Shown here: piece after piece, positions 12,001 to 60,071 of the stretch
Numbering within the stretch: position 1 is the first letter of the stretch
How the letters are laid out: every line of letters begins with the position of its first letter
From: Trichosphaerium sp. ATCC 40318
Taxonomy: Eukaryota > Protista > Tubulinea
NCBI GenBank assembly: GCA_038496445.1
Contig: JALMLS010000548.1
Span: 62,001 to 126,000, forward strand
Direction: 5' to 3'
Length of the DNA: 64,000 bases
Position numbers and translations under genes: made by a program
The notes under the pieces: model-generated
Seen by the model: only the letters and a program-made list of their open reading frames with translations
Told to the model about the DNA's origin: nothing
The model's database searches: none

Positions 12001-13951
12001 AAAACCTCTAAAATGAGGGTTTTTTCACTTGACTGCTTCTTACTATTGGCTTGTAGTTTCGATGAGAGCCTACTTGTTATGGGTTCTATGAGAAGACCAA
12101 AAAGGCTTAAAATGCGTGGTAACGATGAGAAGGATTATCCGTACCTTATAAAGGGTGGTGAAGATCTTCGACTTGATCAGCGTGTTGAACAGTTATTCGG
12201 CGTTATGAACCAAATATTTAAGAAAACACCGGCTACATCAAAGCGTAAACTGCGTATTCATACATACCAGGTACTGATTTGGATATTCCCTTTTGGATAA
12301 TAATTCTGTTGAATCTCACAATACACGTGTTTAAGGTAATACCAATGACAAACAAAGTTGGTATCATTGAGTGGCTTAACAATACAAAACCACTTAAAGC
12401 AATCGTTGAAGAAGAATTAGAAAAACGTGGTGGTAAAGGAGCTCATATTTTAAAGTTACCTGCTGCTAAGATGCATGATCAATGGCTTAAGCAGTATGAA
12501 AAGAGGGCAAAACAGAAAGGTAAGTTTTTTGGTTCTTATTTCTTTCCCGTTTTTGTTCGAAAGATTTATGTTTCGTTAGTTACCTCTGTATCTGAATATT
12601 ACTATCTCATGTTCAAAAGCGCTACCAGAAAGGTAAGTATAAATAGCACACTACTAAATAAACACATATTTAATTTGTTTGTAGGAAACAATGTACAAGA
12701 TGAACAAACAATACGAGTCTGTTCCTTGGGATATTTTGCGTGCTGGTGTTTTATCACTTAGTCGCTCTCCTGAGGCATACCTTCAAATCCGAGAACACTT
12801 TGCTCGCACATTAGCTGTATTCAGCATAGGTTCTTATATTATTGGTACGGCTACATAGTACAATATAAACAACGATGAACTAATTATTTTTAAAGGTATT
12901 GGTGACAGACATCTTGATAACTTCTTATTGGACTTATCTAAGTACGTGTAACGCAATTGATAAAATAGAATTAATTTGTACTTGTTAAAATCTTATTTTT
13001 GCGTTTTTAGTGGTGGCGTAATTGGTATTGATTTCGGACATGCATTCGGTAGTGCAACACAGTTTTTGCCTATTCCAGAATTGATTCCATTCCGTTTAAC
13101 AATGCAGCTTCAAAATTTCCTAAAACCTCTTGATTCTCAAGGTCTTCTTAAGCACGATATGGTCCATGCACTATCAGGTACTTCAACCAGATCATTTTTT
13201 TGCTACATCGCCAATCATGTCTTTCTTTAACTTGTATCCAACTTGTTCGTTTACAGCTTTCTCCGTTCCAACTCAATGTTCCTTGAATAGTTTTTTCCGA
13301 ATTTGTTTTATAACTATGGAGGAGTGTTATCATATTGTTGTTTGGTTATTAACCTATCTGTTTTTTGTAGCATTACAAGGTGGTAAAGAAATTCTTCTTG
13401 GAACTATGGATGTCTTTATCAAAGAACCCTTACTTGATTGGGAAAAACTTGCCAGAAAGCTAGCTGCTGCTCAAGGCAGTAGAGGTATGAGTATAACCAA
13501 AACAGCCAATCAAAAGATTAAACCTGTATGTTTTATTAAACCAATTTGTAGGAAAACAAGAAAAGACTTGGTTCCCAAAGAAAAAGATACAAATCGCTAG
13601 AAGAAAGTTAGAATGTTATAATCCAGCTTTTGTTACTATGGCTGAATTGAAAGATTCTGTTCACCAGAAGCGTAGTTATTTGAACAATGTACTTAATATT
13701 GTATATGGAGATAAAAAGCACAACATAAGGTACAAAACGTCAAAGAAAATCATCAACGTGCACAGAAAAAGACTTGTTTTCTCCGCATTTTTTTCTGCCA
13801 AAAAAAAGGATTCATTTAACTCTTTGGGTTTAGGGCACAAACTGGAGAGATTTGTCCTTCTGTAAAGCGTCAAGTAGATTGTCTAGTAGATCAAGCAACG
13901 GATGATAATATTCTTGGAAGAACGTGGGGAGGTTGGGCCAGTTGGATATAA
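1..13951 (+). CDS. PRKDC: DNA-dependent protein kinase catalytic subunit (PIKK family); multi-exon, 5' end outside the window
   Basis: Exons encode [30 protein letters not shown], kinase motifs [30 protein letters not shown] and [25 protein letters not shown], and the FATC end [22 protein letters not shown] (TAA 13949-13951). All closely resemble DNA-PKcs. Confidence 0.97.
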
Positions 13952-31344: not shown

Positions 31345-34300
31345 CTACTTCTTTGTGATAGTAGATCCTGTCCTTCGTAATAGTTCTCTACATAAATATT
31401 AATTATACGTAAAACACATCATCAATCAAAATTATAATAAAAAATCGAAAAAATCACGTGCCTGAAGTCTCCAGAGGTCTTGGCTTCGTCCTCTTTCTTT
31501 TCTTTATTTGCACTTCGAAGTTTAACTGCGGCCGGATTGAATCCTCCGAATGGGTTCATACCCATTCCTCCACCGCCACCGCCACCACGTGATCCACGTG
31601 CAGCACGTAGTCTGGAACCAAATGATCCACCTGGTGGTAAATTAAGCTTCTTTTTTGGGCCAGCACGGTCATCTGACACAAGGTTGTGAAATTCTATTTA
31701 ACAAATAAGTATTATGGCTTGTACACAATTATCTATAAAGGTATTACCTGAAACAGACTTTGTAGGTAACGCCCTGGCTCCTCTTTGGTGTCCAGCGCGT
31801 TGAGATCTAAAGAAAGTAAGTTTGAGGTGTTTTTGTTGCTGAATAGTTTCTTGTCTTTTTAAAAAGTTGTTTTAAGGTACCTTCTAAGTAAGTAAGCATG
31901 ATCTCTGAGTAATGGTGCCTCGTCAATTCTAGATCCTCTTCGACCTCTTGTCTTTGTACCAATAATCTTCTTAGCTGCAACACCTCCTAGTACAATGTGA
32001 GATTACCAAACAAACACATCGTTTCATCAAAAACAAAACAAAAAAAAAAACTTACTGCGTCTAGTTGGTTGTGGTGGTCCGCTGCTTCCACCATCAGCTG
32101 AATCAAGCGCAGCGAAAAATTTAGTAGCACCAGAAAGAGCCTAATGGAACAAATAAGGTTCAACAACTAAGAAAAGAAATCGTACTTGTGCAATAGAAGC
32201 ATCCATTTCTCTTTCTGTTTCAGAATCTACTTCAGAACTCTTTGAAAGCTCTGAACGCTCTGAAAGTGTCTCACTATCGCTATCAGCAGCAAGAAGCTCT
32301 GATTCACGTTCTCTCTGCATCCTGAGCTGTTCTTTTTCTTGCCACTCATCACGTTCTCTGCGTTCTTTCTCCTACAAAAAAAATAAGCAAGGAAACAAGT
32401 TTCTTGTCTTTTCTTTGACGAAATCGATTCAGAGTGACGTACACGTTGAGCACGTAATCTCTCCTTTCGTAGTCTTTCTTGTTCCTTGATCTCATCTTGC
32501 TCTCTTTCGTACTCGGTACGTATTGTGGCTTGAGCATTCTGTGTTTTTTCTGAAATTGCATCCAGTTCTTTTTGTTTCTGTGCTTGCTCTCTTGCATAGG
32601 CGCCTTCTCGTTCCTTTCTTTCACGTTCTCGTAGTGCCATGAACTCTTGACGTTCACGTTCTTCAAGTTCCTTACGTGCTTTTTCTTCAGCAAGACGTTG
32701 GTCCTCGAGTTCTTTTTCACGTGCAAGCTTAGCAAGACGCTCACGCTCACGTTTTTCAGCAAGGTCACGTTTGAGCTTTTCTTCATCAGCCTTTTTCTTT
32801 GCAGCCCATCTAAACCAGCGTGTCAATAAATTCTATGTATATAGTGAGTAAGACATACCGTTTCCGACGTTCTTCTGCTTGTTGTTGCTTCAAACGTTTC
32901 TTCTCTTCTTCAGCTCTACAACAAAATTAAGAAACTTATGAGAAACAAATTATCGCTCAATCATACCTTCTTTCAGCAGCTGCAGCTTCCTCTTGTTGCT
33001 TCTTTTTCAAAGCCATACGTTGTCCAAAAGTCAACTTCTTCTTAGGTGCCGGAGCAGCTTCAACTGGTTTAGGCTCTTCTTTTGGTGCTACATCAATACG
33101 AAGAGGAGCAGGTTTTGCAACTTCCTTAACAACAGGTTTCGCTTCAACAACCTTTTCTGGTTCAGGTGTAGGCTCAGGGTCATCATCTGTAGCTAATCCC
33201 AAGCGTACTACTGTTGTTGATTGAACAGTATCAGAGATGGCTTGAAGCTCACGGTCTTTTTCTTCTTGCTCTCTTTCATAAGCCTCTTGAAGCTCACGAC
33301 GTTCTCGTTCTCTTAAGGCTTCAAACTGAGCACGTTCTCTCTCTTCCTGGGCTTTACGTTCGCGTTCTTCAGCAAGACGTTGTTCCTCAAGCTCTTTTTC
33401 AAGTGCAAGCTTAGCAAGACGCTCACGTTCACGTTTTTCAGCAAGGTCACGTTTGAGCTTTTCTTCATCTGCCTTTTTCTTCGCAGCCCATCTAAACATC
33501 CCGTAAGTAAAACAACTATTAGCATCACAGATTAATCTTACCGTTTTTTACGCTCTTCTGCTTGTTGTTGCTTCAAACGCTTCTTCTCTTCCTCTGCTCT
33601 ACGTAATTGTTTAATATTTTGAATCGTATACACGTGAAGATTATCATACCTTCTCTCAGCAGCTGCAGCTTCCTCTTGTTGCTTCTTTTTCAAAGCCATA
33701 CGTTGTCCGAAAGTCAACTTCTTCTTTGGAGCTGGAGCAGGTTCTGGTTCTGGTTCTGGTTTGGCTTCAACAACAGGTGCTGGTGTTGGCTCTGGTTCGG
33801 GTTCCTGAGGAGCTTGTACAGGCTCTGGTTCTGGTGTTGGCTCCACCTCGCCAGCAGTGGTAGATTGAACAGCATCAGAGATAGCAGCAAGTTCACGTTC
33901 TCGTTCTTCTTGAGCACGAATCTCAGCTTGACGAGCTTCTTCAATCTCTTTTTGACGAACTGCTTCGAATGCTTGTCGCTCACGCTCTTCTTGCTCAAGT
34001 CTAAGACGTTCAGTCTCTTCTTCTTGGCGTTTAAGTTCAGCAGCGATACGATCGCGCTCTTCTTGAGCCTTACGCTCTTTCTCAGCAGCTTCACGTTTGA
34101 TCTTTTCTTCTTGTTCTTTCTTCTTTGCAGCCCATCTAATTATTAAAAAGTTAATCTTTTTTACTTTTCGTTTTCAATAAAATCTACATACCTTCTTTTA
34201 CGCTCAGCTGCAGCTTCAGCTTTCTTTCTCTTGGCTTCTTCAGCTGCTCTAAGAAAACAATTAATAAATCACTGATGTCAGTAGGGAATTTGTGTACCTT

Positions 34301-37300
34301 CTTTCAGCGGCTGCAGCTTCCTCTTGTTGTTTCTTTTTCAAAGCCATACGTTGTCCGAAAGTCAACTTCTTCTTTGGAGCAGGTTCTGGTTCTGGCTCTG
34401 GTTTGGCTTCAACAACAGGCTCTGGTGTTGGCTCAGGTGTTGCCACTGGCTCTGGTTCTGGTTCTTTAGTGGCTTCAACAACAGGTGCGGATTCTTCGGC
34501 TGGTGGCGCAGTAGTCGATTGAACAGCATCAGAGATGGCAGCAAGTTCACGTTCACGTTCTTCTTGAGCACGAATCTCAGCTTGACGAGCTTCTTCAATC
34601 TCTTTTTGACGAACTGCTTCGAATGCTTGTCGCTCACGCTCTTCTTGCTCAAGTCTAAGACGTTCAGTCTCTTCTTCTTGGCGTTTAAGTTCAGCAGCGA
34701 TACGATCACGCTCTTCTTGAGCTTTGCGCTCTTTCTCAGCAGCTTCACGTTTGATCTTTTCTTCCTGTTCTTTCTTCTTTGCAGCCCATCTAAATACTAT
34801 GTCAAAACATTATCAGTATATATTTTCTGTACCGTTTCCGACGTTCTTCTGCTTGTTGTTGCTTCAAACGTTTCTTCTCTTCTTCAGCTCTACAACAAAA
34901 TTAAGAAACTTATGAGAAACAAATTATCGCTCAATCATACCTTCTCTCAGCAGCTGCAGCTTCCTCTTGTTGCTTCTTTTTCAAAGCCATACGTTGTCCG
35001 AAAGTCAACTTCTTCTTTGGTGCCGGTGCTGGCTCTGGTTTAGGTTCTGGCTTAACTTCTGCAACTGGTGCTGGCTCTGGTTTTGTTTCGACAACAGGTT
35101 CAGGTTTCGCTTCTACTACTGGTTCTGGTTTTGGTTCAGGTGTAGCTTCAACAACCTCTGCAAGTTCAGGTTTATCATCAACAGGGGTTGGAGTAGGTTC
35201 TACTGCTTGAACAGGTTCTTCAGCAGGCTCAGATACTGGTTCCGTGACTTCCCCAGCAGTGGTAGATTGAACCGCATTTGAAATAGCAGCAAGTTCGCGT
35301 TCACGTTCTTCTTGAGCACGAATCTCAGCTTGACGGGCTTCTTCGATTTCTCGTTGGCGAACAGCTTCGAACTCTTGTCGCTCACGCTCTTCTTGCTCAA
35401 GTCGAAGACGTTCAGTCTCTTCTTCTTGGCGTTTAAGTTCAGCAGCAACACGATCACGCTCTTCTTGAGCCTTACGTTCTTTCTCAGCAGCTTCACGTTT
35501 GATACGTTCTTCTTCCTCTTTTTGTTTTTGAGCCCACCTTCGTCGACGTTCTTCGGCCTTTTGTTGCCTCAATCGCTTTTTCTCTTCTTCAGCTCTAAAG
35601 TAAAATTAGAACAAAAAGGAAAGTATTTAAGAGTATCGTACCTTCTCTCAGCGGCTGCAGCTTCCTCTTGTTGCTTCTTTTTCAAAGCCATGCGTTGACC
35701 GAAAGTCAACTTCTTCTTTGGAGCTGGAGCTGGTTCTGGTTTTGTTTCAACAGGAGCAGGTGTTGGTTCAGGTTTAGGTTCTTCTTTAGCTTCCTCAACT
35801 GGAGCTGGCTCTGCTGCTACCTCAACAGGTTCAGGTGTAGGTTCGGGTTTCGTCTCTACTGGCTCAGGCTTAGTCTCCTCAACAGGTTGTGGAGTAGGCT
35901 CTGCTACAACAGGTTCTGGCTCAGAAGTGGCTTCAACAGGTTTAGCTGCCTCAGTCTCTTGTGGTTCATGTGATTCTGTTGCTTCGATGGATTGAGTTTC
36001 TTCAACAGGTTGTGGGGATGTAGATTGAACGGCATTTGAAATAGCTGCAAGTTCACGTTCACGTTCTTCTTGAGCACGAATTTCGGCTTGACGAGCTTCT
36101 TCAATTTCTCGTTGACGAACAGCTTCAAACTCTTGTCGCTCACGCTCTTCTTGCTCAAGTCTAAGACGCTCTATCTCTTCTTCTTGACGTTTAAGTTCAG
36201 CAGCAACGCGATCACGCTCTTCTTGAGCTTTACGTTCTTTCTCAGCAGCTTCACGTTTGATACGTTCTTCTTCTTCTTTTTGTTTTTGAGCCCATCTAGT
36301 ACAAAATTAGTAATTTCACCTTGTCAAAATAATAAAATCAGCAATACCTTCTTTTACGCTCAGCTGCAGCTTCAGCTTTCTTTCTCTTGGCTTCTTCTGC
36401 AGCTCTAAAATATAAATTAAAAAACTTCAAAAGTAGCACGTGAAGATTATTCATACCTTCTTTCAGCGGCTGCAGCTTCCTCTTGTTGTTTCTTTTTCAA
36501 AGCCATACGTTGTCCAAAAGTCAACTTCTTCTTTGGTGCTGGAGCTGGCTCTGGTTTTGTTTCAACAGGAGCAGGTTTAGGCTCTTCTTTAGCTTCCTCA
36601 ACTGGAGCTGGCTCTGGTTTAGGTTCTGGCTTAACTTCTGTAACTGGAGCAGGCTCTGGTTTTGCCTCAACAACAGGCGCAGGGTTCTCATCTTTAGCTA
36701 CCATAACTGGAGCTGGCTCTGGTGTTGCCTCAACAACAGGTGTCACATCTTCAGTTGCAGGTTTTGCTTCCTCTGGGTCAGGCTTAACCTCTTCAGGTTG
36801 TGGAGTAGGTTCTGTAGGTTTTTCTGGAGCTTGGGCTTCAACGGTTGGTTCAGTATTAGCCTCAACAAGAGCAGGTTCCTTTGTTGTTTCAGTAACATCT
36901 TTTTCATCGACAACTGCTTCCACTGATGGCTCTTCTGCTGTTGGTTCCTTTGGTTGAGGTTCAGGTTCAGAGACAGGTTCTGTGATTTCTGGTTCGTCTG
37001 ATACTTCTTGTGTAACAGCTTTAACTGGCTCGGATGGTGTTTCAAGAGGTTCAGTAGCAACGGGCTCTGTTTTCGCTTCAGCTGGTTTCGGATCCTCAGT
37101 AGAAACTGTTGAATCTGTAGCTGGAACTTGTTCAGGTTCTTCGACTGGCTCTGCTTCTGGTTCTTTAACGGGTTCTGGCACTTCCTCAGGTTCAGGCTCG
37201 TCCACCTTATCAGAAACAGTAGCGTCAGTTTTCTCAACTACGACTAATTCTACTTCCTTTGATGGAGCTACAGTTTGCTCAACACTGCAAGAGAAAACAA

Positions 37301-40300
37301 GTTAGAAACGATGTACCGAACTGTATGCTTCCGTACGGTTTATCATCTTCTTCATCTATATGTTCTGGTATGAATTCGACAACAGCATCCGTTTCAGCAA
37401 CAAAAGGTGCAGGTATAGCTTCATGTAATTCATGGTGATCGATTGTATCAAGTTCAACAATGACATCCAGTTCTAATGCATTTTCTTTAGATTCATGAGT
37501 TTCAGTTGGAAACTGTGGTGATTTGACAGCGTTAAAATACGCCACGTGTTGAACACTTGAAGGAGGTTCTTGGACTTCTTGAGTACCTTGAGCAATAGGT
37601 TCTTCAGCTTTCTCAACAGGTTTTGGCTCTTCAATTGGTGTTGCTTCTTCAACAGCCTCAGTTTCTACTGTAGTTGTTTTAGGTTCATGACTTTCAACTG
37701 GGAACTTAGGCGATTTGATAGCGTCATAGTACGCCACATGTTGAACACTTGAAGGAGGTTCTTTAACTTCTTGGGTACCTTGTGTAGGTTCCGTAGTTTT
37801 TTCAACAGTTTGAGGTGCTTCAACGACTTCTTCCTTAGTTGATTGTTCTACCGGCGCTTTAAGTTCGTGAGTTTCAGTCGGGAACTTTGGTGATTTGACA
37901 GCGTTGAAATACGCTACATGTTGCACGCTTGAAGGAGGTTCTTGAATCTCTTGAGTACCTGGAACAACTGGTTCTTGGGTTTCTTCAGCTTGTGCTTCAG
38001 TTGGTTTCTCAACAGGTTTTGGCTCTTCAATTGGTGTCGCTTCTTCAACAGCCTTGGTTTCTAATGCAATTGTTTTAGATTCATGTAATTCTAATGGGAA
38101 CTTTGGCGATTTGATAGCGTTGTAGTATGACACGTGCTGAACTGTTGAAGGTGGTTCTTGAATTTCTTGAGTACCTTGAACAATAGGTTCTTCAACTTCT
38201 TCACTAGGCTTTGTAGCTTCAACAGTTGTTTCTACTGGAGTCGGTTTAGGTTCATGCGATTCTGTTGGGAATTTTGGTGATTTGATGGCGTTGAAGTATG
38301 CCACGTGTTGAACCGTAGATGGAGGTTGGTCAAGATTGCTGGTACCTTCTGCTTCTTTGATTGGTTCTTCTGTAACCGATGGTTCAGTGGCTTCTTGTTT
38401 ATCTGCAACGGGTTCGGCAATAGCTGTTTCTTGTTCTACAGGTACTGATTTAATTTCGTGCGTTTCATCAAAGAACTTTGGAGATTTGATTGCGTTGTAG
38501 AATAAGATGTGTTGAACACTTGAAGGTGGAACTGGTTTTGTTGTTTGAACTTCGTTGGTACCTTTTTCAGGTTGTTCTTGAGATACAACTGGTGCAAGTG
38601 GTTCTGAGACAACTTCTTCTTGTTGAGGTTCTATTGCAACAGATTTAGGTTCTTCATGACTTTCAACTGGGAACTTTGGAGATTTTGTTGCGTTGTAGAA
38701 TAGAACGTGTTGAACTGTTGAAGGTGGCAGCGCTTGAGCTTGAGGAGTACCTTGAACAGGTTCTTCGGATGCCTTCTCAACAGGTTGAGCTTCTTCCGAT
38801 ACAACATCTTCAACGACTGGTTCTACAGGAATAGCCTGAGGTTCAGCAGATTCTACTGGCGCTGGAGGTTCGTGAGTTTCGGTTGGGAACTTTGGAGATT
38901 TGATAGCATTGAAGTACGCCACGTGCTGGACGTTCGAGATAGGTTCACCTATTTGAGTACCTTGAACAGGTTCTTGAGATTTTTCCACTGGTACTACAGT
39001 TTCTTCTTTCTCTGGTTCTAATGGAGTTGATTTAGGTTCATGCATTTCAGCTGGAAATTGTGGTGATTTGACAGCGTTGAAGTACACCACGTGTTGAACG
39101 CTTGAAGGAGGTTCTTGAATTTCTTGAGTACCTTGAGCAGTAGGTTCTGAAACTTTTTCAACAGGTTTCGTTGCTTCTACAGGCGCAGCTTCTTTGGCAA
39201 CAATCGCGACGTCGGTTTCTACTGGACTCGGTTTAGGTTCATGAGTTTCAGATGGGAACTTTGGCGATTTGACTGCGTTGAAGTACGCCACGTGTTGAAC
39301 GCTTGATGGAGGCACTTGAATCTCTTGAGTACCTTGTGAAGGCTCTTCAAACTTTTCAGTAGGTCGTGGTGATTCTTCAACTGGCTCTTGAACAACTTCT
39401 TGTTTTTCTGCAGGTTGTATTGGCGCTTGAAGTTCGTGAGTTTCTGTTGGAAACCGTGGTGATTTGATAGCGGCATAGTACGCCACGTGTTGGACATTCG
39501 AAAGCGGTTCGCGTATTTGAGTACCTTGCGAAGCCTCTTGATCTTTCTCATCAACTACTATTTCTTCCTTCTTTGATTGTTGTTCTACTGGAGCTGAGTT
39601 AGCTTCATGGGCATCAGATGGAAATTGAGGTGATTTAGTTGTGTCGCAATAAGAAATATGCTGAACACTTGAAAATGGCTTTGGCGGTTGAGTTTCGTTT
39701 GTACCTTGAACAACAGGTTCTTCAGCCTTTTCTACAGGTTTTGGCTCTTCGATTGGTGTTGCTTCTTTAACAGCCTCAGTTTCTACTGTAGTTGTTTTAG
39801 GTTCATGCGATTCGGTTGGGAACTTTGGCGATTTGACAGCGTTGTAGTATGCCACGTGCTGAACACTTGATGGTGGTGCTTGAATTTCTTGAGTACCTTG
39901 ATTGCTCGAGGTAACCTCTTTAGGTTCAATACTTGGTACGTCTTTAGCAATCGGTTCAGAAACTTCGCCTGTCGCCTTTTCTTCAGTTGATAATGGTTCA
40001 ACCTTATGAACTTCTGTAGGGAACTTTGGCGCCTTTACTGTGTTATAATATGCCACATGTTGAACGCTTGAAAATTGTGTTTCTTTAGGCTGAGATTCAG
40101 CTTTTTCAGCTTCATTCAAATGTAAATTATCAGCAGTTTCTACCTTGTTCTCTGGAACAGCCTAATCGAAGATTTTAGAGAGAGCAGAAAAGAAAGAAAA
40201 AAATAGGAAACAATGTATTGTTAAGTGGGAGTACCTTCTCAGGATTTGATGCTTCTGGTACAGTTGTGCTTTGAACTTCTGTTGGGAATTTAGGCGAGGT

Positions 40301-43300
40301 TACAGCGCTGTAGTATGTGACGTGTTGAACTGCGGAAGGTGGTCCGCTTAAAATTTGTGTAGGTGCCTGTGGCTGCTTCGATGTTGTTGGTGTTTCCAAT
40401 ACAACTTCGGGTTTCACTGGCATAGATACTACTTCTTGTTGTTCTACAGGTACTGATTTAGGTTCATGTGCCTCATCAAAGAACTTTGGAGATTTGATTG
40501 CGTTGTAGAATAAGATGTGTTGAACACTTGAAGGTGGAACTGGTTTTGTTGATTGAACTTCGTTGGTACCTTTTTCAGGTTGTTCTTGAGATACAACTGG
40601 TACAATTGGTTCTGAGACAACTTCTTCTTGTTGAGGTTGAGGTTCTATTGCAACAGATTTAGGTTCTTCATGGCTCTCAACTGGGAACTTTGGAGATTTT
40701 GTTGCGTTGTAGAATAGAACGTGTTGAACTGTTGAAGGCGGCAGTGCTTGAACTTGAGGAGTACCTTGAACAGGTTCTTCGGCCGCCTGTTGTGGTACTT
40801 CGATTGGAGAAACTTCTGCTTCTTTAACAACAGGTTCAGCTTTCGGTTGTTCTATTGGCAGCGCTTTAGGTTCATGGCTTTCAGTTGGAAACTTCGGCGA
40901 TTTGACAGCGTTGAAGTACACCACATGTTGAACGCTTGATGGTGGTATTTGAGCTTCTTGGGTACCTTGAACAACAGGTTCTTCCACTTTCTCTGCAGTT
41001 ACCGGTGCTTCGATTGTAGAAACTTCTTCGCCGCCTTGTTGCTTGATTGCAGGCTCAAGTTCTGTTGCTGCTACAGCTGGTTTAGGTGTATGCAATTCTG
41101 TTGGAAATTGAGGCGATTTAGTTGCATTGAAATAAGCAACATGCCGAACGCTTGAAAGAGGATGCAAAGATTGTTCTTGATGGTTACCTTGAGCAACAGG
41201 TTCTGGAACTTTTTCGGCGACAGCTTTTTGAACTTCACTTTGAACAGGCGCTTCAGTTGGTTCGTCGTTCTGTTTTGGTTCTACCGCAGTTGATTTAGAT
41301 TCATGACTTTCAGTTGGAAACTTTGGTGATTTGACTGCGTTGAAGTACGCCACGTGTTGAGTGCTTGAAGGAGGTTCTTGGACTTCTTGAGTACCTTGAA
41401 CAATAGGTTCTTCAGCTTTTTCAATTGTTTCAACTTCTACTTCGGCAGTTTTTGTAGCATCAACGACTGGCGCTTCGACAGGTGCAGTTTCTTTGAGAAC
41501 CTCGGTTTCTACTGGATTCTGTTTAGGTTCATGACTTTCAGATGGAAACTGTGGCGATTTGACAGCGTTGAAATATGTCACGTGTTGAACGCTTGAAGGC
41601 GGCTTCTGAACCTCTTGGGTACCTTCGGCAGGGGAATCATTATCCGCAGTAGCAACTTTTTGCTTCTGCTCTTTTACGTCTGCTAGAGCCTCAATGGTCT
41701 CTTCTTTGTTCACTTCATGAACTTGAGATACTACCTGTTCTGGAGCATCAGAGGAAACAGTTTCAGCGGCCTTGTCAACAACACTTTCGTCGGTAGAATC
41801 TTGCGACTTTAAAGTGGGTTTTGACTCGGGCTCAACAACTGTTTGCTCCGCTGCATCCTCTACAGGCGTTGGAGTAACCTCTGAAGGCTCTTGAACTTCG
41901 TTTGTTGGCTCCGCGGATTCGATATTAATTTTCGATTCTCCGGATGTAACTTCCGTAGTTTGCGTCTCCTCTGGTTGTTTTTCGGCTGGTTCTTCAACCT
42001 TTGAAGAGGATTCTGGGTCGTCCTTGTTTAGGGAGGGTTCTTTAGAAGTTTCATTTTGTGAAGTCTCTTCTTTTGGTTTTTCAGCTTTTTCTGAATTACT
42101 TTCGTCATTTGAAGCCTTTGGTTCTTCAACAACTGTAGGTTCTTTAGAATCCTTCTTATTTACATCTTCTTCTACTGATTGAACCGCTTCAGAAATCAAA
42201 GAAAGCCTTTGCTCTCTTTCAAGTTGTTTTCTTTTAACAGCTTCACGCGCTGCTTGTCTTTGTTGTTCTTGAAGTTTTGCGTATGCTTTTCTCTCCCTTT
42301 CTACTTGTTCTCTACGAAGACGTTGTTGTTCTTCGTCTTGTTGCTTAAGCTTAAGTTTAAGAAGCCTTGCTTCTTCCTCAGCTTGTAATTCTTTTTTCCT
42401 TTTTTCTTCAGCAACACGGGCAACACGCTCTCTTTCTAGGCGTTCTTTTTCTGCCCATCTAATTTATGACGTGAGTATAATAACATAACAACTAACAATC
42501 GATTTTTTTTAAAAAACAAGAAACTGCAATACTTCCGAAGAGCTCTTCAAGACTTCTTTTTTCTGAAAATATTATGTGAATTTTTTTTTTCCGCTTCGTA
42601 TGCGGCTTGTGTTTTTCTAATTTTTTTTTTTCGTACCTTCTCCTCCTTTCTGCTGATTTCTCTTCACGAATACGCTGTCTTTCAGCTTCAGCTCTGTAAT
42701 AGTACACCGTCAGTATAATTTAGTTATTTTTTTCGTAAAAACAAGAAAATTAATCTTACTTTTTCCTTTTATCTTCTTCCGCTTTTTGTAGGCGTATCTT
42801 TTCTGCTCTTATCTCAGCAAATGATCTCTTCTTCTTTAAAGCCTTTTGATCGCGTTATTAAATTAAAAAAAAAGCAAAAAAAAAATAATAATTCGATAAA
42901 TATCGTCGTAAGGGTACCTTAGACTCGCGATCTTTTGCTGCTTTTTTCTCTCGTTCTTTTCTATCGCGAATTTGCTTCTTTATACGTTCTTCTTCTTGTT
43001 TCTTCTTAGCAATCCATCTATATCGATCACGTGTTAACATAATTGTTAACTAAACATGTAATTGCGCTTTTTGAAAATTTTTGAATATTTGTCACGTGCG
43101 CCACGTGATTTTTTGGTGAATTTCTTTTTTCGCCTCAAAAAAAAAAAAAAGGATCAAAAACGTGGTATTACCTCTTCTCGCGTTCCTCTTTTTCCTTTTG
43201 GACACGTTTATTACGCTCATCGAGTGCTCTAGTAAAAATATTAGTACCCTCCGATAACCTTTTTTGAAATCGAGAAGCAGTAAACTTCAACGCACTTTAA

Positions 43301-45098
43301 CTTTCGCTCCTTTTCCTCTTTAGCTCTTCGTCGTCTGTCAGCCATACGAGCAAAAAATCCAAGCCCTTCTCCAGACTTGCTTGCAGCTTTTGGTTGAGCC
43401 GGCTTCGGATCATTCTTTCGCGATCGTGGTTCGTTGCCACGCTTTGAGTTTGTCTTTTCAGGCTTGTCTTCGACTTTTTTATCGACATTCTGGTTTTCGG
43501 TTTTGTCTGGTGAAGAAGCCTCTTGCGGTTCATCTACCTTGTCTTTAGGACGCTTTGGTTGCACTTTCTTTGCTCCCTTTTTAGGTGCTGGTTTCACTTT
43601 ACGCTTACTATTTCAGCGCATTAGTAACTCAAATCCAAGGAAAAAATGCATTTGTGCCTTTTGCCCTCTGTAGCTTTATTGTTATCACCAGCAACTGTTC
43701 TTCTAGAAGACTTTTTACGAACCAATGCCCTAGTAGACTTGCTTCTACCAGGACCACTCCTTGCAGCCACTTGGTCAGCTAAAGTGCGTGTAGATTTGGC
43801 GCGCTGTAGTAAACAATGTAAGTTTCTTAACCACTATCAAAACTTTTGCATACAACAGAATTTCTGGTACGAAGAGATCTCTCAGAGCGCTTGCTTGGCG
43901 ACTTCGATCGAGTAGTAGTTAATATTTCTGCATTGTTTGAAGCCTTTGAACGCGTTGTAATAACTGTCTCTCGCTTTGGTGATTTGTTTCTGCTTTTTTC
44001 ACGTTTGGGAGATATAGACCGCCTCTTCTTTGGTGTGACTGGTTGTGGCACTACATGAGGTTAATATAAATCACCTTGTGATCAACTTTATGGCAAAGGT
44101 GGTAGAAACTTATGACAAAAACGCACGTGATTTTCTACGTGTTCTTTCTCCCGCTCTTTGTGCAGTCTTGAACTCAAAAGCAGCAGGTTGTTTTTTTCTT
44201 TGCCTCGAAGGACTCTTTTTTTCGCGTTAATGATAAATATAATGCAACACACGCATACCTTGTTCCTCCACCTTTAAAAATACGTTAACCTTGGTACATA
44301 AAACAACAAACATTGTACGTACTTTGACATTTCATCCTCGGCCTTTGAAGGAGACCAGGTTCTAAACAATCTAATTAACACCACTCCGGCTATTTGATGA
44401 AAAAAAAAAAATAAACAGAAAAGGCAACAACTAATCATCATATGATCCACCTCTATCGGCACGTACTGTCTTCTAGAAGGAACGCGAGTCTTCTTCTTCG
44501 CACTCGGTGGTCGTTCTGATGCTTTTTTTGTGCGTTTAACAGGTGGTTTTGCCTGTTCTTTAGGCTGTCCGTTTTCTTCTGGCTTCTTTTTGCCTTCAGA
44601 TGTTCCGTTGGTCTTCTTTTCGGTCGGTTTACCTTTACCCTTGTCCTCAACCTTGTTACCACCCTTTTCAGCCTTATTGCTACCCCACCAGAGGTTCGCA
44701 AAACTGCCACTAAGCACAAAGGTAAACTTCCACAAATTTATGGTTCTTTGATGCAATTGGTGCTACGTACGATTTTCTAGTGGTACGTTTTTCATTTTTA
44801 GGCTGACTTTTGGTCCATGATGAAAACCAACCAGAGTTTTGTTCTGTGGTCTCTTTACCACCCTTACGCCTTGTAAAAATAGTTAATTAAAACAGTTTTG
44901 GGTTCATTCCGGATTTTCTGTGCACAAACCTGGATGCGTCTAGAAAATGAAGTTAGATGACGGAAATTAGCATAAACTGGGAAGTAGTCATCATATTAAA
45001 GAGTTTTGGCTTTTTTTTGTAATTCACCTTTAGAACAGGCGCAAAAAAAAAACACGTGATTTTGGTTAGGGAATGCATAACGTACTTTGATCGGCCAT
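31345..45098 (-). CDS. Giant (roughly 3,500-4,000 aa) repetitive E/P/K/V-rich protein with two tandem repeat families, charged helices and a C-terminal DFRxxL motif; putative cytoskeletal scaffold/spring
   Basis: Minus-strand exons splice in frame from a basic/SP-rich N-terminus through the 674-aa and 946-aa exons and six KKKLTFGQRMALKKK modules to ...AVKLRSA...GDFRELLRRTGSTITKK* (TAG 31345-31347). The 5' start (ATG 45096-45098, MADQ) is tentative. Confidence 0.75.
32790..36545 (-). repeat. Six tandem multi-exon modules: PEVK-like linker - KKKLTFGQRMALKKKQQEEAAAAERR | RAxEE.. | WA[QA]KKK..E/R/K helix
   Basis: Core motif at about 36520, 35710, 35005, 34365, 33715 and 33035. The intron at 32917-32968 is identical to that at 34890-34941. 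Confidence 0.95.
37490..41620 (-). repeat. 21 copies of a ~25-aa motif (P)PSSVQHVxY[FY]NAxKSP[KQ]FPxExHE, spaced about 55-70 aa apart
   Basis: Counted in the ORF translations: 7 copies in 40175..42199 and 14 in 37279..40119. Confidence 0.95.
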
Positions 45099-45886
45099 TA
45101 TGAGTAAGAATTTACAGGATAGAACCTATCCCGGTGAGTTTGAAAACTAAGAGTGGAACAGGTGTACCCTTTTGATCTACAAGTAACGAAGACCCTTATC
45201 GCTATGTTGTGGCGCCTATGAGAAAGTAAATTCTAGAACTATTTAAACTTTACAAATTTCTGTTCAGGAAAATGCCCAGAGTAGGCGGAATGGATATAAG
45301 ATATCGCGTTGTATCATACAAGAGCTTTTAAAGTCCTAACTTTTGTAGACTGTCTACGCGTGTAAATGGTGTAAACAACTCGAGTTCTCACAATAGAGTT
45401 CTTGCTAACCACGCTAGATGTACTGAATTGTTATTGCTTGACCCGATCAACCAATGTGAATCATAGCATCATCACAAAGCCAAGTTGGTTCCTATTACCT
45501 CTTGTTTACGCTATCAACACTTATCATGTTCCTAGTAAACTCTAGACATTATTTAGGTCCATTTTCTGTTATCGGTGGTTTTATCGTAAAAACTGCACGC
45601 AATTTTGCTGTACAGCGAGTTGTTGGCCATGAGTATAAGTTACATAGTCGTTTTGTACAGCAATCAACACGCTGTATTCTTTCAACTTGCATCCACGTCA
45701 CGTGCCTTTTTGGACTATATCCAGATAGGGTTTAACCAATACCCATTGATAGCAAAAATAAAAATAGTCTATTGCTGTATGACGTGACTACATGCGTACA
45801 ATAATGCTCTACTGCGGTGTAATCCAATAACAATGGAAAAGACAAAGAATCAATTGGCAGATACGCGCGGGAACAGAGCACACTGT

Positions 45887-46065: not shown

Positions 46066-48240
46066 TTATTTAGTCGATTTTTGTTTTGGTTTTTGTTCTA
46101 CAAACCGCATTTGTGCAGCCAATGCTACGTGATCAGAACAAAAGTAAGCATTTGGAAAGAACTTTGCAGGAGCGACACGTTCGCTTGTCATCTTCTCTAA
46201 TATCTTTACAGGTTGAAGTGCATTACCAAACCATATGTAATCCAAGCAACCTATAAACAATCCGTGAGAAACAGGGAATCTTGGAGTTTTTGGCTGACCT
46301 TTGAAGTGTCCACAAATGTTTGTGTATGGTTCTTTTATGCATGCGTAACAACTTTCTAAAGATAAGTTGTGTTTGAGTGTAGAAATATCGACGCGTCTCA
46401 TAGCGCTTAGGTGTTGTCTACAATCACGGTGGCGCTTAGGAATGGACCCATTTCGCAAAAAGCTGAAACAAAATTAGCAAGGACAAGTGCTGGGTTTGGT
46501 TCTATTTTACGTACTCATACACTGAGGAACCAGGTTTACTATTGAAATCTCCAACAATTACATAAGGATAATTATACTTGGTAAGCACTTTTTCTACAGC
46601 TTTTGCAAGATGTAACGACTAAGAGAGTTAATTTACTAATTGGGTAGTTTTTTTTCTAAAAGTGCAGTTGTGCTAGAATGAGTAATCGTACTTGTGCTAA
46701 TTTAATATCTGGTTCAGCAGGATTCCAGTATAAGTGAGTTGAAATAAACCACATTCTTCTTTTATTATCCTTGAACTCTTTTATCTTGTGTAAGCACAGT
46801 GTAACAATTGCATGAAGACTTAAACCAAAAAAAAAAAAAAAGTAAAAAATCCACAGTTGTTGTGCGTACCTTGTTTATCTTTATCAAAAGCTGATTTATC
46901 ATGTACAGAAAACCCTACATTTATACTATATCCCTCAGTAGGGTCAACATCACCTTCTTTATCATCTTCCTTAAACTCCAATAGCAACATAATTCCTACA
47001 TTGTTTTTTCTGTATCTGCTAGATCCAAGCCTGTATGTTTTTACATAGTTACATATATCATCGTAATTTAAGTCTATACGTCGTAAAGCACGAAATCTAA
47101 CAACACTTGAGTAAGAAGACGAATCCAAAAAAGGAAGGATAAAAATTGACAACGACTTGTAAGCTTGGACGTACTTTTTCTTGTTGTAGAATATAGCAGA
47201 TCCATCTGAGGCCATTTTTGGCCGTTTTTTGTATACACTATCATATGTATTACCGAGTTCGCCTTTTAACTCCTTGTATGCGCTTGGTTCAACCTCCTGA
47301 AGACCAACCAAATCGCATGTGTAGTGTCGAAGTTTGGTGATTAGCTTATCTCTACGATACCCCCTAAATTCATAAGTTAGGTTATTCTTGCAGCAAAATA
47401 CAAAGAATATGCAAAGAAAATTAGTGTACCATTTGAGAGCGTATGTTGGAGTGTACCAATAACGCTTTTTATCTGCATAAGAGCTTGCAAGTATATTGTA
47501 AGTCATAACAGTGAATCCTAGAAGTATATTAAACGCATTTAAAGGTAAAAAAATGACCAACAAAAAAAAATCAAATGTTAGATGACACCTGTCGCTGTTT
47601 TTCTATTCAACTAGTCCAATGCGCACCTCCTTTCTCTTGTAATTTAATTCCCTCTGGTTGTGGGTGATCTATCCAATCTCTATATGGCGTAGCCATAGCC
47701 TAGTTGTACGAGTAAACAATGACGCGTCACGGGGTTTTTTTTCACTTACTTCGCTGCCAACCCATATAAGGTGCGCGCTGTGATGTCTACAGTCTGGAAT
47801 AACGACCTCATATTTTATAACATAACCCACATCCTCTCGGAGAAAAGTGTACGACCTGTTTTGTGTTATTGTGTAAACTTACAACGCATTCGTACTCTTG
47901 TTCTGATAGGTCAATCCACTCCTCGTTCTCCAACAGTTGTTTTTTGACAACAGAATTATTTGTTAGACTTCTTTTCTTAACATCGAAAGTAGGACCTTTA
48001 TACCTTTGGGGTCACTCTTAGCGATGTTTAAACTGCTACGTACCAATGAACAATTGCATTTTTATTTAAAGCGTGCTCAACGCGTGGAGTGAATGTATCA
48101 CCCACTCTCGCATGTTTGATAAGCCCAAAAACGCGAATCGACTTTTTCTGATCTTGCCAAACGCTTTTACTCAGGTTTGAGTCCACTTCGCTTGCGAGCG
48201 AAGCCATACCAAGTTCCTCAGTGCCGAAGACGCTTCCCAT
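46066..48240 (-). CDS. CCR4/PDE12/angel-family EEP (endonuclease/exonuclease/phosphatase) deadenylase-like protein
   Basis: FTVMTYNILA, YALKW.YRR..LI, DLVGLQEV, DGSAIFY, ISTHLYWNP...IKLAQ, IVGDFNS, CLDYIWF and FPN...SDHVAL. The N-terminal YTFLREDVGYVIKYEV extension resembles PDE12/plant CCR4; MGSVFG may be myristoylated. Confidence 0.9.
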
Positions 48241-58087: not shown

Positions 58088-59335
58088 CTAATCTACAGGT
58101 GCCGTCAAAACGCAAATATTCTCTTTAGTTTTTTTGCCGAGTTCATAAATAATCTGTGCTTGTAGCTGCCCATTTTCATACCACTTCTTATGTACACCAT
58201 GCTTTTTACCATTAACATAAGAACCTTGCCTTAGCAGAATACCATCATGGTACCACTGCTTATATTCGCCATTTTTTTTACCATTAACAAAAGCAGCTGT
58301 TACTTGAAGTTGTTCATTTTCATGCCACTGTCTGCTAAGACCACTTTGCTTACCATCAACAAACTTACAATGTACATGAAGTGTACCACTATAATACCAT
58401 TGTCTATGCTCTCCATTATTTTTACCATGAATATATGTACATTGTATTTGAAGTTGTCCATTCTCATACCAAGCCTTGAACTCACCATTTATCTTTCCAT
58501 CACTATAAACACATTGTTTACTGAGTCGTCCATTATCATACCAATGTGTAACCGCACCATTAGGTTTATCATCTGAAAACATACAGTCAATAGCAAGTTG
58601 TTCATTCCTATGCCATTTCTTATAGCTACCTTGTTTTTTACCATCAATGACTGTATACTGTAATCGAATTTGTCCATGTTTACGAAATGTAATGACCTCA
58701 CCGTTCTCTAGACCATCAATGAACATACGCTCCATAGCAAGTCGTCCATTTTTATGCCATGTTTTATGTTCGCCGACCTTTTTACCATGATTGTACATAC
58801 ACAGCACTTGAAGCTGTCCATTATTATGCCAACCCTTGAACTCACCATTTCTCTTTCCGTTAATGTAAACACATTGATTACTTAGTTGTCCGTTTTTATG
58901 CCATTCACTTCTTTGACCATTCTCTACATCATCAACAAACATTTGAAGGTATCGAAGTTGTCCATTATCAAACCAAATCCTAAACTCACCTGTTCTCTTA
59001 TCATCAACGTGTGTTGCCTTTATATAAACTTGTCCATTCTTATGCCATTGAGTGTACTTACCATGTTTCTTACCATTCAAAATAGGGTATTGAGCACTCA
59101 TCTCACCACTTGAGTACCAAGTCATCCAACTACCGTGTTTTTGGAGGTCGGCGTTGTAGTGTGTGTTGGTCGCTGCTCTTTTTGATAGCATATGAAACTT
59201 GCGAAATGTTTCTGGGTTGAAGGTGCACAAGTAACACTGAATATCAGTGGGAATGTCCAAGATGTTTTGAGATGAAGGTACAACACTTGTATTGGTGCGA
59301 CAGCACTTATTTGGGTGCGATGATGGTGACTGCAT
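58088..59335 (-). CDS. Intronless F-box-like + MORN-variant (MORN_2/YwqK-like) repeat protein
   Basis: ATG 59335; ILDIPTDIQCYLCTF (F-box-like), then about 14 tandem 24-aa repeats of the type GEFKGWHNNGQLQVLCMYNHGKKV; single open exon. Confidence 0.85.
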   Translation of the reverse strand: MQSPSSHPNKCCRTNTSVVPSSQNILDIPTDIQCYLCTFNPETFRKFHMLSKRAATNTHYNADLQKHGSWMTWYSSGEMSAQYPILNGKKHGKYTQWHKNGQVYIKATHVDDKRTGEFRIWFDNGQLRYLQMFVDDVENGQRSEWHKNGQLSNQCVYINGKRNGEFKGWHNNGQLQVLCMYNHGKKVGEHKTWHKNGRLAMERMFIDGLENGEVITFRKHGQIRLQYTVIDGKKQGSYKKWHRNEQLAIDCMFSDDKPNGAVTHWYDNGRLSKQCVYSDGKINGEFKAWYENGQLQIQCTYIHGKNNGEHRQWYYSGTLHVHCKFVDGKQSGLSRQWHENEQLQVTAAFVNGKKNGEYKQWYHDGILLRQGSYVNGKKHGVHKKWYENGQLQAQIIYELGKKTKENICVLTAPVD

Positions 59336-60071
59336 TGTTGGCGATCTACAAGAAGCTTGTGAGTCAGAAAAAAATACGAAAGCACGTGTTTTCAAAGTAT
59401 GAAACGCAAGAGTAAAACGGCGGTATTTGCGCAATTTACGAGTAAATTGAAAACAAAAGACTATGAGAACTCGCTACACAAAAAAAACCGTCAAAAGGCC
59501 GCAAAAAACGAAGCGCTGGCTTCTGCTCGGGCTGGAATCTCGTCCGATGATATAATTTTTAAGTCGGCTTAAGAAAACTAGAAAATGGCTCGCTTTTAGA
59601 GGTCCTTACGCTAAGGAATACTATTTGCCGCGGTTTTAGAGTGAGATCGATGGTGGTTTTAGTATGCGCCTTTTTACGCTTATATAACGGCTACAACGCG
59701 TCTAGCGTACCTTTTTAGACGGTTTAACGTAAAATATCGACTAAATACGCTTTTTGTTCTTAAATCCTGCTTTACTGGTGAATGTGAGTGAAGGTAGGTA
59801 TTGCAATGGCCAAAGAAAGTCTCGTAGAAGCTTAGGGACTTTTTCTTCGTACCGCCAAATTTTTTTACCGCCTCGTCACGTTTGTTGCGTTGGTTTTATA
59901 CAGGTACATTGTACTTCAACACAAAGCAATGTAAAGTGCGCGTAATGCGAGTACGTTTAAAATTTTTAATAATGACCACGTGGGATTACACAACTCTTGG
60001 TGAGATACTGTAAAGTAGGCTCAAATTTTTTTCGCTGAGGTAAAGACGTTGTGGCTTATGTATCTTCATCA

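Follow-up and report, generated by a model that had tools for sequence, protein, structure and literature searches.

A candidate giant tether protein of single alpha-helices, P/E-rich linkers and a 21-copy motif in the amoeba Trichosphaerium sp.

Our study concerns a 64,000-nucleotide (nt) stretch of the genome of Trichosphaerium sp. ATCC 40318 (GenBank assembly GCA_038496445.1, contig JALMLS010000548.1, forward-strand positions 62,001 to 126,000; hereafter the window) and a gene of ~13.7 kb on its minus strand. We tentatively conclude that this is one expressed gene, that its protein of ~3,700-3,835 residues has no globular domain, and that the protein acts as a long, extensible and multivalent tether or spacer. 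The spring, spacer or tether interpretation is based on composition, structure prediction and strong purifying selection, and elasticity, like a role as a ruler, is conjectural. Our most original result, new here, is that conserved motif units of the protein double as in-frame introns.

Results

The coding region extends on the minus strand from an ATG at 45098 to a TAG stop codon at 31347-31345. These limits coincide exactly with those of an earlier note, made from the sequence alone, that had described a single minus-strand gene. Our model, built from junction sequences, divides the coding region into 34 exons separated by 33 introns of 43-178 nt. The frame stays open over 3,835 codons, free of internal stops, and the protein has a single cysteine. 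The joined model of 3,835 amino acids (aa) was used only for frame, composition and allele statistics. Introns are short throughout (42-178 nt when the intron of the 5′ untranslated region (UTR) is included), with GTA(C/A/T) donors and TAAC/TAAT branch-like boxes near the AG. Coding introns are GT-AG except for two GC-AG introns, 43657-43608 (present in cDNA) and 31461-31388 (inferred), both of which begin GCAC.

Transcript evidence was taken from cDNA-like contigs of public RNA runs X1, X2 and X4, which were placed on 39200-45150 only and give no isoform proportions. The contigs join the ATG exon, through 14 introns, to the first of two giant exons. A 1,614-nt X2 contig matches with 0 mismatches and is spliced at all predicted junctions from the ATG exon to the start of giant exon 1 at 42458, which places the basic head and the motif array of the protein in one mRNA. 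Joints 43017/43172 and 42458/42637 were both seen in cDNA, the latter connecting the head to giant exon 1, and two micro-exons, 44939-44930 (10 nt) and 44271-44259 (13 nt), were also confirmed by cDNA contigs. Transcription begins upstream of the ATG. Contigs of X1, X2 and X4 run past 45126 with loose ends of 101-132 nt that map to 45169-45198 and beyond, identifying a 42-nt GT-AG intron in the 5′UTR (45167-45126) and a 5′UTR exon that ends at 45168 (45168..45300, the upstream limit being approximate), both on the minus strand.

The order of the exons, all on the minus strand, is as follows. Fourteen small exons (42637..45125, with the ATG at 45098-45096) encode the basic head and the first Glu/Arg/Lys (ER/K) exons, as indicated by the X2 contig, frame and composition. 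Giant exon 1 (40235..42458), a 762-codon open frame with the cDNA joint to the head, carries an ER/K helix, an acidic spacer and motif copies 1-7. Giant exon 2 (37337..40161), identified by its open frame and RNA contigs, carries motif copies 8-21, and its first 18 nt (40161-40144) act as a separate mini-exon in X2. An inferred intron (37336-37285) separates it from a long P/E/V/T-rich exon (36457..37284) with an open frame and the first KKKLTFGQRMALKKK unit at its end. The exon-duplicated modules (32443..36404) were recognized from junction sequences, AlphaFold2 and allele comparison, and the six tail exons (31345..32371, aa 3600-3835) from frame and allele comparison.

Direct transcript support covers the 5′ 40% of the gene, and 18 introns of the 3′ half are inferred. 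Eleven of these 18 repeat two junction types, ..ERR|R-AEEE.. and a phase-2 ..R|R-W.. junction. Since the R|RW type is identical to the cDNA-confirmed joints 43017/43172 and 42458/42637 and the frame stays open, we regard the inferred 3′ introns as well grounded. The single transcript proposed in the earlier note is therefore established by cDNA from the head to the array, whereas the modules and tail are joined to it by inferred introns.

The head (aa 1-485), which is basic and SP-rich as previously described, has a net charge of +93 (K 19%, R 13%) and ends in the first ER/K exons. All seven of the protein's CDK-type [ST]Px[KR] sites lie within it. A further ER/K helix and an acidic spacer follow, and then the array. 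In the protein as a whole, we counted six KKKLTFGQRMALKKK units and eight RW-initiated ER/K helices. These correspond to five complete modules of helix, P/E-rich linker and KKKLTF segment, with one more P/E-rich unit ahead of them and one more helix behind. The six helix-plus-linker modules proposed earlier are thus right as a count of KKKLTFGQRMALKKK units, but complete modules number five. Each module consists of a 57-nt mini-exon (RAEEEKKRL..), an ER/K helix of ~131 residues, a P/E-rich linker of 42-99 aa and KKKLTFGQRMALKKKQQEEAAAAER, in that order. Modules are connected at the recurring R|RW phase-2 intron, and the module region has a net charge of -90. When one module was modeled with AlphaFold2, residues 2-112 formed a helix (~111 residues) with a predicted local distance difference test (pLDDT) score of 94-97, and residues 113-197 were disordered. 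The KKKLTF segment (KKKLTFGQRMALKKKQQEEAAAAER) was predicted to be helical and would continue into the next module.

Eight charged stretches without Pro or Gly, each 106-226 aa in length (1,112 aa in total), have a charged fraction of 0.48-0.64, with 0.27-0.54 opposite-charge pairs at i to i+3/i+4 per residue and a LIVMFYW content of 11-16%. Their best hydrophobic occupancy of heptad a/d positions is just 0.17-0.23, which disfavors a coiled coil and favors an ER/K single alpha-helix (SAH). The stretches have the sequence properties by which such helices are recognized, being rich in E, K and R, with opposite-charge pairs and no heptad hydrophobic seam, and the ER/K helices are charge-neutral. 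An uninterrupted AlphaFold2 helix lacking a heptad seam and alternating with disordered linkers agrees with the E/R/K helices expected from the sequence. Likewise, a Pfam scan of ten large exons (E≤1) found no domain, as anticipated for a protein without a globular one. Pro, Glu, Val and Lys make up 63-77% of the module linkers, and the corresponding fraction of the array linkers is 0.55. The ~70% P/E/V/K content that characterizes PEVK proteins is therefore reached by composition, without demonstrated homology, and the term "PEVK" used in the earlier note applies to the linkers as a compositional match only.

The array (37480..41638, minus strand; aa 760-2121) was defined by alignment of its copies and by AlphaFold2, and has a net charge of -117. 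It contains 21 motif copies, the same number reported previously, set in P/E/V/K-rich linkers. The motif consensus, QGTQE..PPSSVQHVAYFNAVKSPKFP for short, is QGTQExQxPPSSVQHVAYxNAxKSPKFPTExHExK, with a period of 56-76 aa and acidic linkers. Copy 8 is degenerate, and KSP is present in 19 of the 21 motifs. AlphaFold2 analysis of four units predicted one 13-residue amphipathic helix (STVQHVAYFNAIK) per motif with a pLDDT of 66-76, the remainder being disordered. A weak, short helix within disorder is a pattern typical of elements that fold on binding. Nucleotide diversity among the 21 copies is 0.20, 0.20 and 0.42 at codon positions 1, 2 and 3, respectively. The possibility that the repeats are non-coding "introner" elements was rejected, as third positions vary twice as much as the others and the amino-acid changes are conservative.

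Allele comparison was made possible by a second haplotype. Positions 1-8488 of contig C407 are an uncollapsed haplotype, collinear over 8.5 kb with positions 39688-31204 of the window at 97.3% identity and extending into neighboring genes. This indicates that the assembly holds haplotigs and that the genome is heterozygous at ~2-3%. A codon-by-codon comparison of the gene with this haplotype gave a ratio of nonsynonymous to synonymous polymorphism (pN/pS) of 0.18 for all compared codons (87.5 synonymous to 54.5 nonsynonymous changes). The ratio was 0.01 in the ER/K helices (38 to 1), 0 in the tail (6 to 0), 0.17 in the P-rich parts of the modules (12 to 6) and 0.24-0.29 in the motif cores (15-16 to 12-16). 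The array linkers, at 0.69 (13.5 to 31.5), are almost neutral. Taken together, the low pN/pS and the codon-position diversity of the motifs indicate translation of the gene and constraint on its protein, which is strongest in the helices and tail.

RNA contigs also revealed that at least four in-frame segments within the two giant exons are spliced out. Motif unit 1 corresponds to a 111-nt optional intron (41512..41622; GT..AG joint 41511/41623 in X1), unit 3 to one of 117 nt (41071..41187; GT..AG joint 41070/41188 in X1) and unit 10 to another of 117 nt (39588..39704; joint 39587/39705 in X1 and X4). The fourth, of 111 nt (40033..40143), is the first half of the degenerate unit 8. It was recognized from an X2 loose end at 40035 that leads to the AVPEN mini-exon, and its boundaries were read from the sequence. 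All four lie on the minus strand and are in frame. In X2, the unit-10 donor at 39705 is joined to an acceptor at 37474 (the loose end matches 37473 downward), so that ~2.2 kb is skipped in frame. Other units are kept in contigs, for example those at 39333-39587 and 40824-40994.

The splice signals are themselves part of the codons: "QGT" supplies the donor (G|GTAC), and "PVE", located after "HEPK" (CCTAAA), supplies the acceptor (..CCAG|TA). A phase-1 G|GTAC donor is present in 19 of the 21 units and a phase-1 AG acceptor lies just past the motif in all of them. Because the donor phase is shared in this way, any donor could pair in frame with any later acceptor. The Gly codon of the donor is GGT in 19/19 units, whereas GGT accounts for 37% of the gene's remaining Gly codons, and neighboring synonymous sites vary. 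This constancy points to selection on a nucleotide signal, with the proviso that the copies are not mutually independent. The excised segments have the properties that define exitrons: they start with GT and end with AG, are divisible by three in length, contain no stop codon and are seen spliced out in RNA. Genomic deletions and template switches by reverse transcriptase were rejected as sources of the excisions, which have exact GT-AG ends, share 2 nt of letters and are shorter than the repeat period; in addition, unit 10 is present in both haplotypes. X1 differs from both assembled haplotypes and cannot be taken for the C407 allele, with which it agrees at 1 of 4 variant positions. Since X1 departs from both haplotypes and the contigs carry no proportions, these data do not separate constitutive from alternative excision.

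Two other loose ends of X2, at 39830 and 44590, run into sequence from elsewhere, and one of them continues ..NAVKYPTAPEPE, which matches a paralog on contig C22. These are probably assembly chimeras between paralogs, and joints in the array that are seen in a single contig need to be treated with care.

The building blocks of the protein occur separately in two partial paralogs within the genome, and the tail is unique to this gene. The paralog on contig C22 (488991-491273) has a 761-codon exon with eight PPSTVQHVLYYNALKSQKFP motifs and is without the QGTQE donor part, the ER/K modules and the tail. It replaces KSP by KSQ, AST or SSA. A possible first exon of this paralog starts with MGAIIS, resembling an N-myristoylation signal, and a C2-domain gene is located 1.1 kb downstream. 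The paralog on contig C27 (223990-226200) has only ER/K helices, P/E-rich linkers (EPEPIKEPEP..) and a KKKMTFAEKLAAMKRKQKEEE unit (KKKMTF), and it shares the ..RR|RWAAKKK (RW) intron junction. With KKKMTF in this paralog, a reading of KKKLTF as a PP1-binding RVxF motif was rejected. LC8 TQT, tau-like and secreted-matrix readings were also without support, and the protein has no signal peptide.

Relatives outside the genome were sought by several approaches. Neither the 960-aa exon nor the KKKLTF end of a module returned any in word searches. A profile of the 21 motifs run against 1.84 billion representative proteins returned six matches, all of them translated junk repeats. There were no look-alikes in the ESM Atlas, no matches in Protein Data Bank (PDB) sequence searches with the motif profile or with the module, and none in a metagenome scan with the motif pattern. 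The libraries searched are poor in amoebozoan proteins, and the organism's own transcripts were not returned either. Because amoebozoan proteins are so few in them, these results are only weak evidence that the protein is an orphan.

Discussion

ER/K helices and PEVK-type linkers are both known as mechanical springs or spacers. With this in mind, we can speculate on how the protein would work. The ER/K helices (~20 nm each) would be single alpha-helices acting as stiff spacers or constant-force springs, and the P/E-rich linkers between them would act as entropic springs. The 21 motifs may fold on binding and recruit many copies of one partner, while the basic head may adhere to an acidic surface. 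At the other end, the tail could contact actin via a WH2-like LRSA element, a step for which support is weak. In-frame splicing of motif units would then alter both the length of an isoform and its number of motifs.

The earlier note had likened the gene to titin and nebulin. Homology to either was not found in Pfam, word or profile searches, and none of the tests that we ran places the protein in the titin, nebulin, MLCK or WH2 family; it may nevertheless work like them. Similar to titin's PEVK region and the PEVK/actin-binding N-terminus of smooth-muscle and non-muscle MLCK, it has long disordered P/E/V/K segments, modular exons whose length is changed by splicing, and one DFRxxL. In contrast to these proteins, it has no Pfam match to Ig, Fn3, kinase or PPAK repeats and no sequence homology. 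With nebulin it shares many short, evenly spaced repeats in a giant protein for which a ruler role has been proposed. However, PPSSVQHVAYFNAVKSPKFP is unrelated to SDxxYK, the Pfam nebulin repeat is not matched, and the repeats here recur every 56-76 aa, separated by acidic disordered linkers, whereas those of nebulin are helical, 35 aa long and contiguous. The closest structural comparison for the helices is with the SAH domains of myosin VI/X, caldesmon and drebrin, as these too are E/K/R stretches (here of 106-226 residues) without Pro/Gly or a hydrophobic seam and are predicted as one helix. SAH domains as such are common in eukaryotes, where they serve as springs or spacers (PMC5812594), and they have been described as constant-force springs (PMC4183817). 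What differs here is the presence of eight in one protein, six of them near-identical exon duplicates under very strong purifying selection, with no motor or folded domain attached.

The excised motif units resemble exitrons in being GT-AG, stop-free, in-frame segments (111-117 nt) that are removed from some RNA contigs. Unlike exitrons, the excised unit is the conserved repeat motif itself, with a shared donor phase. One could propose that each 37-39-residue motif unit is both a selected peptide and a self-contained phase-1 intron with CCTAAA as a branch-like element, and that combinatorial splicing sets the number of motifs and the length of the tether. We consider this proposal doubtful. 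If true, the amoeba would have a protist equivalent of the differential splicing by which titin's spring is tuned.

The tail (aa 3600-3835) is acidic and Ser-rich and then Arg/Gly-rich, and it ends in ..FGGFNPAAVKLRSANKEKKEDEAKTSGDFR|ELLRRTGSTITKK (..GDFR|ELLRRTGSTITKK). The Gly-rich tail with AVKLRS and DFRELL noticed earlier is present. According to the junction sequence, DFR|ELL (31378..31469, minus strand; aa 3820) is split by the last intron, the inferred GC-AG intron 31461-31388. DFRxxL occurs once in the protein, against an expectation of 0.004 from composition, a figure qualified by the post hoc choice of the motif. In MLCK, F-actin is bound through three to five tandem DFRxxL motifs, one per actin monomer (PMC2196421), and a single copy does not sustain the suggestion that DFRELL is an actin-binding region of the MLCK type. 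A second candidate is FGGFNPAAVKLRSANKEKKEDE (31485..31550, minus strand), a putative WH2/thymosin-like element suggested by a faint leiomodin-2 alignment and by complex prediction, the Pfam WH2 family being unmatched. In a comparison of the tail exon with PDB sequences, ..VKLRSANKEKKEDE of the tail aligned with ..NSLRSVQEKKMED of the WH2 region of leiomodin-2 at a non-significant E of 0.64. The WH2/thymosin-beta profile consists of an amphipathic helix and then LKKV/T, and the resemblance to it is limited to LRSA and the KEKKEDE that follows.

Complex prediction was performed with the 76-aa tail exon, which leaves the DFRELL end outside it across the exon junction, and the canonical 376-aa actin P0086, chosen because introns interrupt every actin gene of this genome. 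The scores of the three runs were 0.57-0.59 (median 0.58), compared to 0.02 for the best of three controls. The pLDDT of the partner was 40-41, and at least 36% of contacts were shared among runs. In calibration, 51 of 78 solved complexes passed the mark, as did 2 of 108 mismatched pairs; scores at or below 0.60 comprised 5 of the 78 solved complexes and all of the passing mismatches (4/180). Binding of actin by the predicted tail, which would otherwise have seemed unlikely, is raised by this prediction to a possibility still short of even odds. The actin anchoring put forward in the earlier note thus gains from the score of 0.58 versus 0.02, and is held back by the low-score band, the non-significant leiomodin-2 match and the lone DFRxxL. 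The actin gene family of this amoeba is very large: an actin profile hits 112 sites spread over dozens of contigs, and an intron near residue 110 interrupts nearly all of these sites.

A number of observations count against an actin-linked tether. The score of 0.58 falls in a band where passes are more often wrong than right, and it may reflect the model's memory of WH2-actin structures. No Pfam family, WH2 included, matches the tail even at E≤10, and the region before LRSA is Gly/Pro-rich, with no clear amphipathic helix, which also sets it apart from leiomodin-2. More generally, the searches (Pfam, word, profile, ESM Atlas, PDB and metagenome) yielded no homolog of known function, and the linkage of the modules and tail to the array depends on 18 inferred introns outside the RNA-covered region. 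Finally, the S/TPKK sites and nuclear localization signal-like runs of the head, together with the RGG-like tail, fit a nuclear or microtubule-bound protein equally well.

The latter point raises two other explanations. In the first, the protein would be a structural microtubule-associated protein (MAP) or "entropic bristle", in which a CDK-regulated basic head sits on the acidic surface of microtubules and the acidic array and modules project as a spacing arm. The distribution of charge agrees with this, with the head at +93 and holding all seven [ST]Px[KR] sites, and the array and modules at -117 and -90, as does the presence of KSP in 19/21 motifs. The design is also like that of structural MAPs, such as the projection domains of MAP2/MAP4, and of the KSP-rich side arms of neurofilament H. 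However, no tau/MAP2 repeat or other MAP domain was found in Pfam. The 31-32-residue PGGG repeats of tau/MAP2/MAP4 gave no match there, and the motif shares with them just a VQxV-like core. KSP is not kept in the C22 paralog (KSQ, AST, SSA), and actin, the sole partner run, passed, if weakly. We therefore consider a MAP unlikely.

Alternatively, the protein could be a nuclear scaffold, belonging to chromatin, to the chromosome periphery or to the nucleolus. Its H1-tail-like head would then bind nucleic acid, its tail would be an RGG box and its charged body would serve as a spacer or surfactant, similar to Ki-67. In favor of this, the head has TPKK, SPKR, SPKR and SPSK sites and runs such as KRKVKPAPKKGAKK, the tail contains RAARGSRGGGGGGG, and the organism is reported as multinucleate in a passage of PMC10521059. 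Yet the Pfam scan detected no FHA, PP1-binding or other nuclear domain, and there is just one RGG-like stretch. Being charge-neutral, the ER/K helices would be unlikely to bind DNA, and the actin test gave a weak pass. On balance, a nuclear role appears improbable.

A fast-evolving low-complexity frame without specific function, or several genes wrongly merged, would fit the lack of relatives outside the genome in the searches made, the almost neutral array linkers (pN/pS 0.69) and the 31.3-37.3 kb region without RNA evidence (contigs being placed on 39200-45150), but is very hard to reconcile with synonymous to nonsynonymous ratios of 38:1 in the helices and 6:0 in the tail, a frame open across 33 introns, cDNA that joins head to array, an R|RW junction that is the same in cDNA-confirmed and inferred introns, and paralogs that keep the motif and module.

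To our knowledge, giant spring or spacer proteins of modular build have been described mainly in animal muscle. In this amoeba, a protein composed solely of SAH and PEVK-like segments and a new motif in 21 copies appears to be of independent origin. If the tether interpretation is true, this mechanical design would be a general solution and not a specialty of muscle. The protein would also provide a simple system for studying how a chain behaves mechanically when stiff and floppy segments alternate in it, and how the length and valency of a protein are tuned when repeats are spliced out in frame. Further, since the motif is without a detectable relative, its partner could reveal a new interaction module.

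Neighboring genes

Three other frames in the window deserve mention. A minus-strand frame at 46820-47563 gave a weak endonuclease/exonuclease/phosphatase match and may be a retroelement remnant, and a plus-strand frame at 12279-12761 matched weakly as a PI3/PI4-kinase fragment. The minus-strand frame at 58088-59434 encodes a MORN-repeat protein (E 5.5e-40).

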